A DNA stretch of 18,416 nucleotides, taken from positions 1 to 18,416 of the forward strand of contig NW_008806307.1 in assembly GCF_000400465.1 (NCBI RefSeq). The letters are read 5' to 3'. The notes below the pieces were generated by a model. It saw only the letters and a list, made by a program, of their open reading frames with translations. It had not been told where the DNA came from and made no database searches. The position numbers and the translations under genes are program-made. Numbering within the stretch: position 1 is the stretch's first letter; each line of letters begins with the position of its first letter. Shown piece by piece: positions 13,569-18,416 of the stretch. Source of the stretch: Wallemia ichthyophaga EXF-994 (lineage: Eukaryota > Fungi > Basidiomycota).

Positions 13569-14820
13569 ATGACGGGAATACAAGGCACGATTCAAGTGAG
13601 TTTGGTGGCTGGGTTGTGGCTTTGCTGACACATAAAGACTCAATTTTGGGCTGTTAGAGATTACCTCGCTCCGGTTAGTATATCGCCTAGCGCTCCTCAG
13701 CCGCTGACTCGAGCAGGTGCTTAGGGAATCAAAATTCAAAGAGCACGGCAGAATTACTCCAGGTGCGTCTCTGCCAGCTGAGCTACTTCCCACTCACACT
13801 CACACCAGATGAATTCGTTGCCGCTGGCGAGTTTCTAACATACAAATTTCCGACGTGGACGTGGTGCAGTGGTGATGAATCGAAGCACAGAGACTATCTG
13901 CCTGCCGATAAGCAATATCTCATCACCAGAAATGTCCCTTCACTTCGCAGAGCCAGGGATATGGCCTTCACAGACAGTCTAGGCGACCCTGATAATGAAG
14001 CTTTCCTGAAATTCGTAAATGATGAGCTTACAGTTGGTGGTGAAGAAGGTGAGGATGACTGGGTTCAGACTCACGCTGGAAACCAATCAAAGGGCGATGT
14101 TCCAGATATCATGCCATCCATTTCGCCCACAAACTCACCCACTATACAACCCTCATCTCCTCAAAAATCTAAAGACAGCCAAGACATTGAGAATATTCAA
14201 GATATCCCTGATATGGAAGACGACGACGATTTTGGTGTGATTGATGAGCCAGATGATCCTGCAGTGGTTGATACGGGCAGCAGTGGCGTGCTCAAGGTGC
14301 GAACGTACGATTGTATTATTACATACGATAAGTACTACCAGACACCGCGTTTGTGGTTACAAGGCTACGATGAGGTGGGTGGTGCTTTTTCATCCAAGAC
14401 AAGGCTAAAACAGAGTAGCACCAAAAGCCTCTCTCATACAACCAAATACTCGAAGACGTTCCATCTGACCACGCCAACAAAACAGTCACCTCAGAACCAT
14501 TCCCCCACTCAGCATCAAACACACCAATGCTTTCTGTTCACCCATGCAAGCACGCGTCAGTGATGAAGAAAATGATAGAAAGGCTGGATACAAAGGCTAA
14601 AGCGGATTCACCGAATACGTCAACTGCCACATCCAAGAAGAAGGGTTGGCTGAGTAGTGTTGTCGGTGGATCGAAAAAGCAACCACAGTCGCAGCAGCTG
14701 CAACAACAGCCCGAGACGGATAGTGAAGATGGATTGCGCGTTGATCAGTATCTCGTAATGTTTTTAAAGTTTATGGCGGGGATACTAACAGTGGAGATAG
14801 ACGCGACGACGTCTTTCTAG
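13569..14820 (+). CDS. ATG3: Autophagy E2-like enzyme Atg3, about 358 aa
   Basis: Exons 13569-13595, 13638-13673, 13717-13762, 13809-14374 and 14419-14820 (introns of 42, 43, 46 and 44 nt) give 1077 nt. Motifs: [44 protein letters not shown], catalytic SVHPCKHA, RVDQYL..FLKF. Confidence 0.95.
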
Positions 14821-14941
14821 GTGAGTAGATTTATCAGTAAATCACAGCTGTTAAATTTAAAATATACCCAACGAGATTTGTATTTTGAATACTTAATTGA
14901 ATTTAACGAATAAACCTTTTTACTTCAAAACGTCATCAGCA

Positions 14942-16291
14942 ATGGACCCATCGATGCCAATTATTGTGCGTTGAACGTGATGGAAATTCCCCACTCATAG
15001 CCATCCTCAGATCGACAACGGTACCGGTTTCGTAAAGACTGGTTACGCAGGCTCTAATTTCCCGGAGCACGTATTCCCCTCAATCATCGGTAGACCAATC
15101 CTCAGAGCAGAGGAGAGAGTCGGCAGCGCTGAGATAAAGGATCTCATGATTGGCGATGAGGCCGAGAAGTACAGAACTTTCCTGCAGGTCACTTCACCTC
15201 TTGAACACGGTGTCATCAAGAACTGGCCTGATATGAAGAATCTCTGGGATTATACCATTTTCGATAAGATGCGTATCGATCCTAGCGGTAGAAAGGTTCT
15301 CCTCACTGAACCTCCAATGAATCCACTCGCCAATAGAGAGAAGATGTGCGAGGTCATGTTTGAAGAATACGGCTTCGATTATGTCTACATTGCTATCCAG
15401 GCTGTTCTCACTCTCTATGCGCAAGGTTTGTTGCTATCTTCAATACAACCATGTCATCTCACCCCGCTCAGGTCTTCAAACTGGCGTCGTCGTCGACTCC
15501 GGTGACGGTGTTACCCACGTTGTCCCCGTCTACGAAGGTTTTGCTCTCCCTCATCTCACTAAGCGTCTCGATGTCGCTGGTCGCGATGTCACCAGATACC
15601 TCATCAAGCTTCTTCTCATGCGTGGATACGCCTTCAACAGAACTGCTGACTTTGAGACAGTTAGAGAGATCAAGGAGAAGCTTTGCTTTACTAGGTGAGC
15701 TATTGGCTCGTTAAGCACCCCAATTAACATGGTATAGTTATGATCTTGAGTCAGACAAGAAGCTCGCCGAGGATACAACCACCCTCGTCGAATCTTACAC
15801 TCTCCCAGATGGCCGTGTTATTAAGGTAGCCAGTGAGCGTTTTGAGGCTCCAGAGTGCATGTTCCAACCGCACCTCGTCGATGTCGAGCAGCCTGGTATC
15901 GCTGAATTACTCTTTAACACCATCCAATCCGCTGCAGTTGACACGAGATCTGAACTCTACAAGCACATTGTTCTTTCCGGTGGTAGCAGTATGTATCCAG
16001 GTCTTCCGTCACGTCTCGAGAAGGAAGTCAAGCAGCTTTACCTCCAAAACGTCGCTGGTGGTAACCCGGATCGCTTAGGCGTAAGTTACTCTCTTCCAGC
16101 TTATAACCCTGCTTACCACTCCCCAACAGAACCTCAAAATTCGTATCGAAGATCCACCACGGAGAAAGCACATGGTTTTCGTTGGTGCTGCTGTTCTTGG
16201 TCAGATCATGGCTCAGCGCACAAACGATTTCTGGGTCTCCAGACAAGAGTGGATGGAAGAGGGTCCTAGAGCGTTGCAAAAGCTTCATTAA
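14942..16291 (+). CDS. ARP2: Actin-related protein 2 (Arp2/3 complex), about 388 aa
   Basis: Exons 14942-14965, 15011-15425, 15472-15694, 15738-16080 and 16130-16291 give 1167 nt. Motifs: [71 protein letters not shown]. Confidence 0.97.
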
Positions 16292-16482
16292 TGCTTCAAA
16301 TATACAATACATGATTCAAACAAGCCGACGCAATGACAATGGATTGTAAAGTTAAAATCTTATACCAATTTTAAGTTCTGTATTGACCTTGCAGGCAGTA
16401 TTAGCCATTCTCAGATGAAAAAATTGAGTTCATAAATCACATTGCTTTTGGCTTCTTTGGGTTTATTGATATGATTGTTCTA

Positions 16483-16511
16483 CATAGGTTAGTTTGCATA
16501 GGTTAGGTTAG
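16483..16511 (+). repeat. Degenerate telomere-like TTAGG units
   Basis: CATAGGTTAG TTTG CATAGGTTAG GTTAG. Confidence 0.7.
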
Positions 16512-16873
16512 CAAGCATTTAATTATTGTCGATACAATTTGTCTTATTTCTAAAATACTTTTTAAAAAAAAAAAGATGAAAAATTTGTGGTAATCCAAAT
16601 GATCGCTTAGAACTCAAAATACGCTGTCCTTGCGCGTATAAGGCCCAATGATAACAGTCTTGTAAGCATTTCATAATGCGGCGTTATCTTTCGCCATTTC
16701 TGAAACACTTCATTCGAAGAATCCGTTACGAAACCCCCCGCAGTGAGAAGAAGCGGAACAAAGGAAGTATCAGTGAGGTCCCCGTACTTGTTGACCTTTT
16801 CACGCTCATAAAACGACAGCTCCATCTTGTACCGACCCAATGGGCCAAGATTCTTGAGGTGGGTCGCTGCCTC
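16512..16873 (-). mobile_element. 5'-truncated RLE-type (CRE-like) non-LTR retrotransposon fragment, family B
   Basis: Frame open from 16873 to TAA 16607: EAATHLKNLGPLGRYKMELSFYEREKVNKYGDLTDTSFVPLLLTAGG..; aligns by eye to the C-terminus of the larger element (KVDKY..FVPLVFSAGG..FKAWR). Flanked by AGGTTAGGTTAG on both sides. Confidence 0.85.
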
Positions 16874-16886
16874 AGGTTAGGTTAGG
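16874..16886 (+). repeat. Short perfect TTAGG tract between the two retroelements
   Basis: AGGTTAGGTTAGG; the first 12 nt are identical to 16500-16511. Confidence 0.8.
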
Positions 16887-18416
16887 TGATAAATGAGATC
16901 TATATGTAAATGACAAAGAAAAACGAAATGTCTGAGAAATTTTCACCGCGTACGCTATCGGACCAAGACATGACCAACGCACTCCACCAGGATAAACACC
17001 ATTGTTAAACCATTAAGAGAACCCTCAATTGACCAGGCGGAAGTTCGTAACCCGTTTTCGAACTAAGGCAAAGGCGATGAGACGTTGAAGGTGATCCCAA
17101 CTTGGGACGATACTCCGCCAAGCCTTGAAGAGGTCCATAGTATGCGCACTCAAGGCACCGCCAGCACTGAAGACAAGTGGCACGAAGTCTAAAGAGACAA
17201 CGTGCCGATACTTGTCCACCTTCTTTGCAGCTTGGTGGCTCAAACCGGCCCGTAACAGCTGCATCCCATCTTTCTGTTGCCAATCCTTAGTAATTGAAGC
17301 GATATAAGGGGCTAAGGCGGAAGCAGAATGGATAGTGATGTCATGCATGGCGTACGCGCCAGCACCGTTAGCGTGGCTGAGGACCAAGTCCATCCTCATC
17401 AAGTTGTGAGGATCCTCTGGAGCTAACTTCTTCTCCGTCGATACAGATACACCTGCCGCCTTGAGATAACTAGCAAGGTGGTCCCGCACCTTATCGTGTC
17501 GCCACGTCTTGATTTGAACTCGGTCACGACAAATGTCATCATGGCCAGGCGTGTTGTGCTGACCACAATGGCAAATGTGTGCCTCGCCAGGACACAGCGT
17601 CCGCAGGTGGAGAAGAGCCTTGAACTCAGAGTTAGTAAAGCGCAGGCCAGGCTCAAATGGTAGAGACGTAAGAGGCTTTCGCCCCAATTTCGTACCATTC
17701 TCCGCCAACTGTAACTTGCCATAAAGGTCAAGCCCATCACTCAGCTCCTTATACCTCACAGCATTCGCCACATCAGTGTACGTTCGCTGCTGGGTGATTG
17801 GGGGCTGATTCAGGTCAGAAGACGGGTGAAGAATGAGCTGTAGCTGCCGTCCAGCTTGCTCAGCCATGGCTTTACGCGCGAAGGGTGCTACACGTGCGTG
17901 CGATACTATACCTAGGCCGCCTTGATATGACGGAAGATGAAAAAGATCTTCGTCCGTGGGTAAGACTCTAGGAGAGCCGCGCAACTCACGAATAGCAGAA
18001 CGGAAGACATCGTCTACCCGGTGCCATTCATCCCCAGCGTCACTGAGGTCCAACGAGCGCTGGAGGTGTCGAAGCGATGCTTGAAATGACTTTGATAACA
18101 GAAGCCACGCATACTGAGTCCGCACAAGTCGTAAACGACTGAGCTTACGCTTGACTACCTCCAATTGTCTACGAAGGAACCCCACACGCACGTGCCTAGG
18201 ACCCACCACTGTACCTAGCAACTCCATCCCCTCAGTGCGTATATCATCCACCGATTTCGATAAACATTTATCTTTATTCAACTTGATCGAAAGGTTCAAC
18301 GAATCAAGAGAAGAAAAGACGTCCTGTTGAATATCGGTATTGGATAAGACATACACATCATCCAAATAGGAAAGCACTAAACCTTTATCACCTATTGTTA
18401 AGGTTTGGGTTTGTCT
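16887..18416 (-). mobile_element. RLE-type (CRE-like) non-LTR retrotransposon, family A, 5' part beyond the window
   Basis: Uninterrupted RT/Zn-knuckle/RLE ORF, then a 138-nt 3' UTR ending directly at CCTAACCTAACCT with no poly(A). Confidence 0.9.
17025..18416 (-). CDS. Reverse transcriptase + CCHC zinc knuckle + restriction-like endonuclease (partial, 463 codons in window)
   Basis: Frame stays open to the window edge (RQTQTLTIGDKGLVLSYLDDVYVL). Motifs: YLDD catalytic motif, LFHLPSYQGGLGI, CHCGQHNTPGHDDIC, RHDKV, RMDLV, HDITI, KKVDKY, FVPLVFSAGG. Confidence 0.93.
   Translation of the reverse strand, partial: RQTQTLTIGDKGLVLSYLDDVYVLSNTDIQQDVFSSLDSLNLSIKLNKDKCLSKSVDDIRTEGMELLGTVVGPRHVRVGFLRRQLEVVKRKLSRLRLVRTQYAWLLLSKSFQASLRHLQRSLDLSDAGDEWHRVDDVFRSAIRELRGSPRVLPTDEDLFHLPSYQGGLGIVSHARVAPFARKAMAEQAGRQLQLILHPSSDLNQPPITQQRTYTDVANAVRYKELSDGLDLYGKLQLAENGTKLGRKPLTSLPFEPGLRFTNSEFKALLHLRTLCPGEAHICHCGQHNTPGHDDICRDRVQIKTWRHDKVRDHLASYLKAAGVSVSTEKKLAPEDPHNLMRMDLVLSHANGAGAYAMHDITIHSASALAPYIASITKDWQQKDGMQLLRAGLSHQAAKKVDKYRHVVSLDFVPLVFSAGGALSAHTMDLFKAWRSIVPSWDHLQRLIAFALVRKRVTNFRLVN

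Follow-up and report, generated by a model that had tools for sequence, protein, structure and literature searches.

At the right-hand end of an 18,416-nucleotide (nt) stretch of DNA from the salt-loving fungus Wallemia ichthyophaga EXF-994 (contig NW_008806307.1, forward strand; this whole stretch is hereafter called the window), two antisense retrotransposon remnants, designated elements A and B, lie one behind the other, each with its 3′ end set directly against telomere-like TTAGG units. With a probability of roughly 0.8, this arrangement is a head-to-tail array of 5′-truncated copies at a W. ichthyophaga subtelomere, derived from two lineages of a telomere-repeat-specific retrotransposon of the R2/CRE type, that is, one without long terminal repeats (non-LTR). 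Judged by their sequences, the elements appear to group with Cnl1 of Cryptococcus in one fungal clade.

Read outwards on the plus strand, the array starts with the telomere G-strand units TAGGTTAGGTTAG (16499..16511, plus strand), which adjoin the 3′ end of the element B remnant (16512..16873, minus strand, 362 nt); further G-strand units, AGGTTAGGTTAGG (16874..16886, plus strand), separate B, at its 5′ end, from the 3′ end of the element A remnant (16887..18395, minus strand, 1509 nt), and a telomere-like variant tract of 21 nt, TGTTAAGGTTTGGGTTTGTCT (18396..18416, plus strand), runs from the truncated 5′ end of A to the end of the window. On the minus strand, the 3′ ends of A and B both finish in CCTAACCTAACC, in the same orientation and without a poly(A) tail. 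An earlier note on this DNA had described the docking of both 3′ ends on one pentamer, and direct reading bears it out: the exact 12-mer AGGTTAGGTTAG is present in two copies in the window, both on the plus strand and each at the 3′ boundary of an element, while none of 200 shuffles gave a match. With a 10-mer and one mismatch allowed, the window yields five matches against 0.74 expected. Since the plus strand passes from (TTAGG)n directly into an antisense 3′ untranslated region (UTR), the G strand would have primed the complementary DNA (cDNA), and the 5′ end of each element faces the chromosome tip.

The host telomere repeat and the chromosome end

The last host gene, which marks the inner edge of the subtelomere, is an actin-family (Arp-like) gene (14900..16292, plus strand; stop codon at 16290-16292); PF00022 (Actin) is recorded on its orthologues in loci L005, from a second W. 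ichthyophaga sample, and L006, from W. mellicola. The syntenic Atg3-Arp locus of other assemblies was fetched via the Atg3 protein. In W. mellicola CBS 633.66 (scaffold JH668248.1, L006), the same gene order is kept to the scaffold end, where at least 12 perfect TTAGG units are found (18277-18339); in the mellicola-type contig SPRH01000100.1 (L008), the contig end consists of 12 perfect TTAGG units (13618-13677). TTAGG is thus the telomere repeat of Wallemia, being the sequence in which two assemblies terminate at a syntenic locus. The G strand of both terminal tracts runs 5′ to 3′ outward, as it does in the units of the window, and the orientation of TAGGTTAGGTTAG is that of the terminal (TTAGG)n tracts in L006 and L008. 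By synteny with W. mellicola, the right end of the window is probably a W. ichthyophaga chromosome end or subtelomere.

A TTAGG telomere is unusual in Basidiomycota, yet it has been reported for Postia and Heterobasidion (PMC7857110). Literature searches combining Wallemia with TTAGG and with telomere found no paper giving this repeat for Wallemia, and the terminal tracts described above provide direct sequence evidence for (TTAGG)n telomeres in the genus.

The distance from the actin-family gene to the array or telomere varies among the loci. The terminal TTAGG tract begins about 0.9 kb beyond the gene in L008 and about 5.6 kb beyond it in L006, where the interval holds three more genes, one of them NmrA-like; in W. 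ichthyophaga, the unique DNA between the actin-family stop codon and the first telomere-like unit measures 193 nt (direct reading, plus strand). The difference in tract position between L006 and L008 is a terminal truncation or healing polymorphism.

Element A and its endonuclease

Element A consists of a 3′ UTR of 138 nt without poly(A) (16887..17024, minus strand), which ends in CATTTATCA before the CCTAA units and is 99.5% identical to its counterpart in locus L001 of W. ichthyophaga, and of a coding remnant with 455 open codons and a stop (17025..18395, minus strand; stop codon at 17025-17027) that covers motif C of the reverse transcriptase (RT), the thumb, a linker, a CCHC knuckle and a restriction-like endonuclease (RLE). 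Over 1516 nt, beginning at 18395, A and L001 share 99.5% nucleotide identity, and L001 goes on upstream into the RT. Element A had been taken for intact in the earlier note; it is instead a 5′-truncated remnant, cut at about 18395 with its reading frame unbroken, and retains only RT motif C and what follows. This motif, YLDD (18357..18368, minus strand, read from the translation), occupies a nearly invariant column in an alignment of 70 sequences and is the sole RT active-site motif left in the window copy. The protein remnant is 99% identical to W. ichthyophaga P0001; such proteins stand in the database as “hypothetical proteins”.

The CCHC knuckle and RLE motif, located by a regular-expression match, span residues 274-351 of the remnant (17340..17573, minus strand) with the pattern C-x-C-x7-H-x3-C-x9-RHD-x19-E-x12-RMD-x15-D. 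In the alignment of 70 relatives, C274, C288, H299, E320 and D335 are invariant, and C276, H284, R298, R333 and D351 nearly so; the pattern fits the CRE/SLACS and MoTeR/FoTeR endonucleases as published (PMC12857005). Pfam gives no match on the A and B pieces of the window because the RT is almost wholly missing from them, and PF00078 (RVT_1) is present in P0001 and in the fuller relatives P0125, P0127, P0160 and P0134. A sequence search of the PDB returned R2 proteins as the best matches, followed by LINE-1 ORF2p. An AlphaFold2 model of the A remnant, built on the alignment of 70 relatives, reached a pLDDT of 92.7 and a pTM of 0.88; in a Foldseek search of the PDB, its top seven matches, the only significant ones, were all R2 (E = 1e-9 to 4e-7, TMq 0.52-0.60), the best being 8gh6 (E = 1.1e-9, TMq 0.60), with an identity of A to these R2 structures of only 13-16%. 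Motif and modelled fold together support an R2-like endonuclease in element A, with predicted nuclease activity.

The full-length relatives contain a single open reading frame (ORF) of about 900-1000 amino acids in a unit of about 3.2 kb, on which Pfam recognizes RVT_1 only. The element type, with a single ORF, an N-terminal zinc finger, the RT, a CCHC knuckle and a C-terminal RLE, is that of the R2/CRE architecture. The N-terminal finger, C2H2-like and conserved as CPxCxxxYxxxLDHxRKxH, is found at 50-130 in L011, 72-120 in L012 and about 621-700 in L015; it has no Pfam match and is common to Wallemia and the ascomycete Rhynchosporium.

Two other element types were considered and rejected. The TRAS/SART type with an apurinic/apyrimidinic (AP) endonuclease is ruled out by the C-terminal position and RLE type of the endonuclease, by the lack of any AP family in the full-length relatives and by the lack of poly(A); an endonuclease-deficient Penelope-like element (Athena/Coprina) is ruled out by the conserved RLE motif and a fold match to R2 only.

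Element B and its junction

Element B is reduced to a 3′ UTR of 95 nt, also without poly(A) (16512..16606, minus strand), and to the last 87 codons and the stop of a 5′-truncated coding sequence (16607..16873, minus strand). Over 84 nt, its 3′ UTR shares 88% identity with the one located ahead of a truncated A copy in L002. The proteins of A and B are homologous yet distinct, with 36% identity over the last 70 residues (E = 8e-16). B is 51% identical to P0003 and 36-45% identical to other members of the second of two Wallemia lineages (see the tree below), and no protein cluster is closer than 51%; the W. ichthyophaga proteins P0127, P0159 and P0160 are partial and lack their C-termini. B appears closest to this second lineage.

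The end of B reads ...GCTTG CTAACCTAACCT in the window (GCTTG followed directly by CTAACC) and ...GCTTGTTCA CCTAACCT in L005. The two orthologous junctions (window 16499-16516, L005 12538-12555) differ by two substitutions, GGTTAGCAAGC versus GGTGAACAAGC; as the B end of L005 matches the B 3′ end of L002, it is the window copy whose end has changed, and it has done so toward a perfect telomere unit.

Extra bases are found at the 5′ junctions of two truncated copies, as CCTAACCT-GAG-GCAGCG in the window (16871-16873) and as CCTAACCT-GAGG-CGCTCACC in L004 (about 2391-2394). In these two cases only, the additional GAG(G) may represent untemplated additions or a TCAGG variant unit.

Other copies in Wallemia

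The junctions retrieved from Wallemia follow one pattern, in which an element 3′ end is succeeded by 6-19 nt of telomere units and then by the next copy, differently truncated. In the sense of the elements, L001 shows the 3′ end of an unknown element (...CGTCA), then CCTAAC, then an A copy truncated elsewhere; further on, this A ends in ...TATCA CCTAACC, behind which comes a B-like copy with yet another truncation point. In L002, a B-type 3′ UTR (...GCTTGTTCA) is followed by CCTAAG and by an A copy truncated at a third point, and L005, the counterpart of the window locus in the other W. ichthyophaga sample, shares the B junction. L004, an 85% relative of W. ichthyophaga P0127, has its 3′ UTR followed by CTAACCTAACCCCTAACCT and by a truncated copy of itself. 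In L012, CTAACCTAACC stands immediately before a full-length 5′ end, and L011, a different lineage, has this leader too. L013 (W. mellicola-type, 64% to A) forms a self-closing tandem unit of about 3.23 kb in which the ATG of the ORF comes directly after the inter-copy tract, and L006 holds a 5′-truncated relic of the L013 lineage, with telomere-like units on both sides, a few kb inward of the true telomere. Nucleotide identity among three A copies with different flanks is at least 99.4%, which suggests recent activity of the A lineage.

Except at the inner edge of an array, a unique non-telomeric 3′ flank is found in no retrieved copy. Random 3′ flanks or a scattering of copies through chromosome interiors, either of which the earlier note had held to speak against telomere targeting, were seen in none of them.

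Two further features concern the W. mellicola-type copies. A degenerate tract, TAACCTAAAACCTAACCAACCAATCC(A/G)TAACC(A/G)TAACC, follows the W. mellicola A-like lineage in two unrelated contexts (L013, 1-63 and 3224-3286; L006, 15809-15855); it could be a telomere-like tail borne by the element, could belong to the following copy as a 5′ leader like that of MoTeR1, or could be a junction that recombination has copied. The called ORF start of L013 (424-520), a metagenome scaffold, carries a palindrome with 24-bp stems, which may be an assembly artefact.

Relatives in other fungi

A profile made from four members matched 940 proteins at E <= 1e-5, and wherever the DNA of these relatives could be read, the 3′ end of the element adjoins the host’s own repeat. 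In Oculimacula yallundae (repeat CCCTAA), the junction reads ...CAAA CCCTAACCCT, and the element, with its 5′ end outward, is located on a 2.9-Mb contig at a distance of about 1 kb from the contig end; a relative from a metagenome has its 3′ end at CCCCCTAACCCCCTA; and the Rhynchosporium copy (L015), located 620 bp from the chromosome end, also has its 5′ end outward, with variable number tandem repeats (VNTRs) upstream. In Cryptococcus neoformans (CP091248.1, L014), the chromosome starts with (CCCCCTAA)n, which is followed by an element, a 100-nt tract and a series of fragments; each fragment finishes in CCCCCTAACCCC(C)TAA and is succeeded by a 5′-truncated copy, a layout that matches the published picture of Cnl1 arrays. 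From their position and from the literature, the Cryptococcus chromosome-end proteins, each entered in the database as “hypothetical protein”, are probably Cnl1.

In a quick maximum-likelihood tree, made up solely of database relatives identified by organism, the Wallemia proteins form one clade (SH-aLRT 99) with two deep lineages, the A lineage on the one hand and P0127, P0160, P0159 and P0003 on the other. This clade is sister to a Cryptococcus/Naganishia clade (SH-aLRT 95-100) and the ascomycete copies stand apart from both; the tree thus follows the phylogeny of the hosts.

Ascomycete relatives carry tandem repeats with units of about 60-83 bp upstream of the ORF (L003, 1-180; L015, 100-600), like the VNTRs of FoTeR, and no such upstream repeats were seen in the Wallemia copies. 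A scan of JGI metagenome contigs with the family profile produced 58 pattern matches, none of which was confirmed.

Proposed mechanism and competing explanations

The junctions described above are those predicted by target-primed reverse transcription at telomere repeats, a process proposed for MoTeR and FoTeR (PMC12857005; 10.1101/845669). In Wallemia, the element protein would bind its own RNA, and a 3′-OH on the G-rich (TTAGG)n strand would prime reverse transcription from the 3′ end of that RNA; the outcome would be an element that meets CCTAA units with its 3′ end, towards the centromere, and has its 5′ end directed at the tip. Incomplete reverse transcription or later terminal erosion would give rise to 5′-truncated copies. 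Telomerase would then re-cap the end, the next insertion would take place distal to the first, and mixed arrays with very short telomere tracts between the copies would accumulate. The conservation of the RLE suggests that the priming 3′-OH comes from a nick in duplex telomere DNA, and this G-strand nick is probably made by the RLE itself. Short interstitial tracts (6-19 nt) and varied 5′ truncations match what is seen in MoTeR arrays, where interstitial tracts comprise three repeats at most and longer ones are reported to break, and where truncated copies are found and truncated insertions arise de novo (10.1101/845669). The copies most probably arrived by retrotransposition and not by recombination, and the element families are probably still active. 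The suggestion of the earlier note that two different RLE lineages share a TTAGG target, as a candidate telomere-repeat-targeted system, finds support in the host tracts, the independent junctions, the relatives’ own repeats and the R2-like endonuclease.

The main rival to nicking of duplex telomere DNA, although an unlikely one, is an endonuclease-independent addition, in which the elements would attach to the natural single-stranded G-rich 3′ overhang or to an eroded, uncapped chromosome end, with a CCUAA-like 3′ end of the element RNA pairing with the overhang; targeting would then do without the RLE. Attachment to overhangs or ends has been proposed for endonuclease-deficient Penelope-like elements and for HeT-A/TART of Drosophila. 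Orientation and junctions are equally compatible with such an addition, the G strand being the primer either way, and terminal erosion would also leave 5′-truncated proximal copies; pairing is made plausible by the several elements that end in ...TCA directly before CCTAA and by the telomere-like tract carried by one lineage. However, across 70 relatives from both phyla the CCHC/RLE residues vary hardly or not at all, and the reading frame of the remnant is uninterrupted; this speaks for selection on the nuclease. In addition, the interstitial tracts measure 6-19 nt only, whereas addition to a normal tip should trap a full-length tract unless it is later lost, an argument that is weak, as MoTeR tracts of more than three repeats are reported to break (10.1101/845669).

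It is similarly doubtful that, in the whole clade, the target is mainly set by pairing of the 3′ end of the element RNA with the G strand and not by protein recognition. If this were the case, the elements would track changes in the host unit (5, 6 or 8 nt) automatically, across more than 400 million years of fungal evolution. The telomere-complementary end of the RNA could be borne by the element or gained by read-through into the flanking tract. Part of this doubtful reading is that, in the tiny, repeat-poor Wallemia genome, the several coexisting lineages may have turned into a regular component of chromosome-end structure and might even back up telomerase.

Less likely again is an array built mainly by recombination, whether break-induced replication, unequal exchange or gene conversion between ends, that copied old junctions and left the telomere units as relics. 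For MoTeR and Cnl1, recombination is documented as a cause of array growth, shrinkage and movement from one chromosome end to another (10.1101/2021.08.11.455996; 10.1101/845669), the same degenerate tract recurs in two W. mellicola contexts, and the B junction is common to two W. ichthyophaga samples. Nevertheless, each retrieved junction differs in truncation point and in partner (A after B, B after A, the unknown element before A), for which independent events are the simpler explanation; moreover, recombination only redistributes copies and offers no account of the host’s own repeat as the 3′ flank in every host examined. Alongside retrotransposition, recombination between ends surely also shuffles such arrays.

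Finally, it is very improbable that the CCTAA units are an element-encoded tail, that the elements insert at unrelated sites and that their adjacency to a chromosome end is a coincidence. In favour of such a tail, the W. mellicola A-like lineage keeps a telomere-like tract with it. Against it, CCTAA units also precede full-length 5′ ends (L012), synteny pairs the locus with a genuine terminal TTAGG tract, the relatives are found at chromosome ends and carry whichever repeat their host has, and no copy with a unique, non-telomeric 3′ flank was found away from the inner edge of an array.

Several points nonetheless weigh against a subtelomeric array formed by telomere-specific insertion. No terminal (TTAGG)n tract is seen in W. 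ichthyophaga, where the window ends inside the array, so that the position at a chromosome end rests on synteny with W. mellicola. The other Wallemia copies are on short, repeat-only contigs; short-read assembly biases the view, and interior insertions are possible. The degenerate telomere-like tract, being conserved with the W. mellicola lineage, indicates that part of the “telomere” sequence at the junctions can be element-borne. The register is not strictly constant either, since B ends in GCTTG before CTAACC in the window and in GCTTGTTCA before CCTAA in two other B copies. Kinship to MoTeR1, FoTeR, CRE and SLACS is drawn from the published motif and the literature, not from the tree.

Comparison with known systems

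MoTeR1, FoTeR, Cnl1, SLACS, CRE and CZAR have been placed together in a single clade of elements that are site-specific or telomeric and show asymmetric junctions with the telomere (2025, PMC12857005), and Cnl1 builds subtelomeric arrays in Cryptococcus (10.1101/2021.08.11.455996). Cnl1 of Cryptococcus neoformans/deneoformans resembles the Wallemia elements in its basidiomycete host and in its single ORF with RT and C-terminal CCHC/RLE; it lies head-to-tail at chromosome ends, with 5′ ends outward, 3′ ends on the C-strand repeat of the host and 5′-truncated downstream copies (L014). The Cryptococcus chromosome-end proteins match the Wallemia profile at E ~1e-190 to 1e-198 and make up the sister clade. 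By contrast, the target unit is TTAGG in Wallemia and TTAGGGGG in Cryptococcus, protein identity is only about 29-36%, and the Wallemia proteins fall into two or more deep lineages that comprise at least four clusters.

MoTeR and FoTeR are likewise embedded in telomeres, with a comparable REL-ENDO motif, C-x2-C-x6-H-x3-C-x9-RHD...E...RAD...E (PMC12857005), asymmetric junctions with host repeats at the 3′ end, truncated copies and short interstitial tracts. A leader of the form TTCGGG(TTTGGG)n is reported for MoTeR1 (10.1101/845669), to which the tract at 18396-18416 bears a resemblance, and a telomere-like variant tract on the 5′ side, as in MoTeR, is possible both there and in L013. Unlike Wallemia, the hosts of MoTeR and FoTeR are ascomycetes (the rice blast fungus Magnaporthe/Pyricularia oryzae and Fusarium oxysporum) with a TTAGGG repeat, and MoTeR1 measures 5 kb, compared with about 3.2 kb for the Wallemia tandem unit.

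With R2 of Bombyx mori, zebra finch and turtle, the Wallemia elements share the end of the palm, the thumb, the linker, the zinc knuckle and the RLE fold as seen in structures from cryo-electron microscopy. The logic of target-primed reverse transcription is common to R2, CRE, SLACS and CZAR, and the motif pattern is that of CRE/SLACS (PMC12857005); however, the Wallemia target is the telomere repeat and not 28S ribosomal DNA or spliced-leader genes. TRAS1 and SART1 of Bombyx mori are also telomere-repeat-specific non-LTR elements and use the same pentamer, (TTAGG)n. TRAS/SART elements have an N-terminal AP-type endonuclease, two ORFs and a poly(A) end, whereas in the Wallemia elements the endonuclease is a C-terminal RLE, the ORF is single and poly(A) is lacking; the TTAGG target common to both is convergent.

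In light of these comparisons, the view of the earlier note that the combination was undescribed is overstated, as the elements are of the Cnl1/MoTeR/FoTeR kind in a host with a five-base telomere unit. What is new is modest and consists of the Wallemiomycotina host, the pentamer target, the occurrence of several lineages together in a very small genome, and the direct evidence for the Wallemia telomere repeat; literature searches combining Wallemia with retrotransposon and with telomere found no description of such elements in the genus. Without overturning current understanding, the Wallemia array adds a third basidiomycete subphylum, Wallemiomycotina, and a pentameric TTAGG telomere to the known range of the Cnl1/MoTeR/FoTeR type. 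With one RLE family on TTAGG, TTAGGG or TTAGGGGG depending on the host, the retargeting of an R2-like machine becomes directly comparable across hosts, and W. ichthyophaga, with its very small genome and a simple array at this end, could be convenient for the study of telomere-transposon dynamics.

The array edges and the remainder of the window

Between the unique DNA downstream of the actin-family gene and the first docked units lies a lone degenerate telomere unit, AGGTTAG (16486..16492, plus strand, read directly), followed by TTTGCAT; this stretch is identical in L005, from the other W. ichthyophaga sample. Elsewhere, the window consists of ordinary compact fungal gene space, with genes for CAND1/TIP120, a Nas2-like protein, a kinase, DNA ligase I, Cpn60, Atg3 and the actin-family protein; tRNA and Rfam scans of the window found nothing. 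At the outer edge, the variant string TGTTAAGGTTTGGG(T/C)TTGTCT at the truncated 5′ end of A (18396-18416) is also present in L001 (187-210), where it is turned the other way round with respect to the array; an inverted segment or an additional repeat family may lie behind this. Far from the array, TTAGGTTAGA at 375-384 is a single one-mismatch match to two telomere units and is most likely due to chance.

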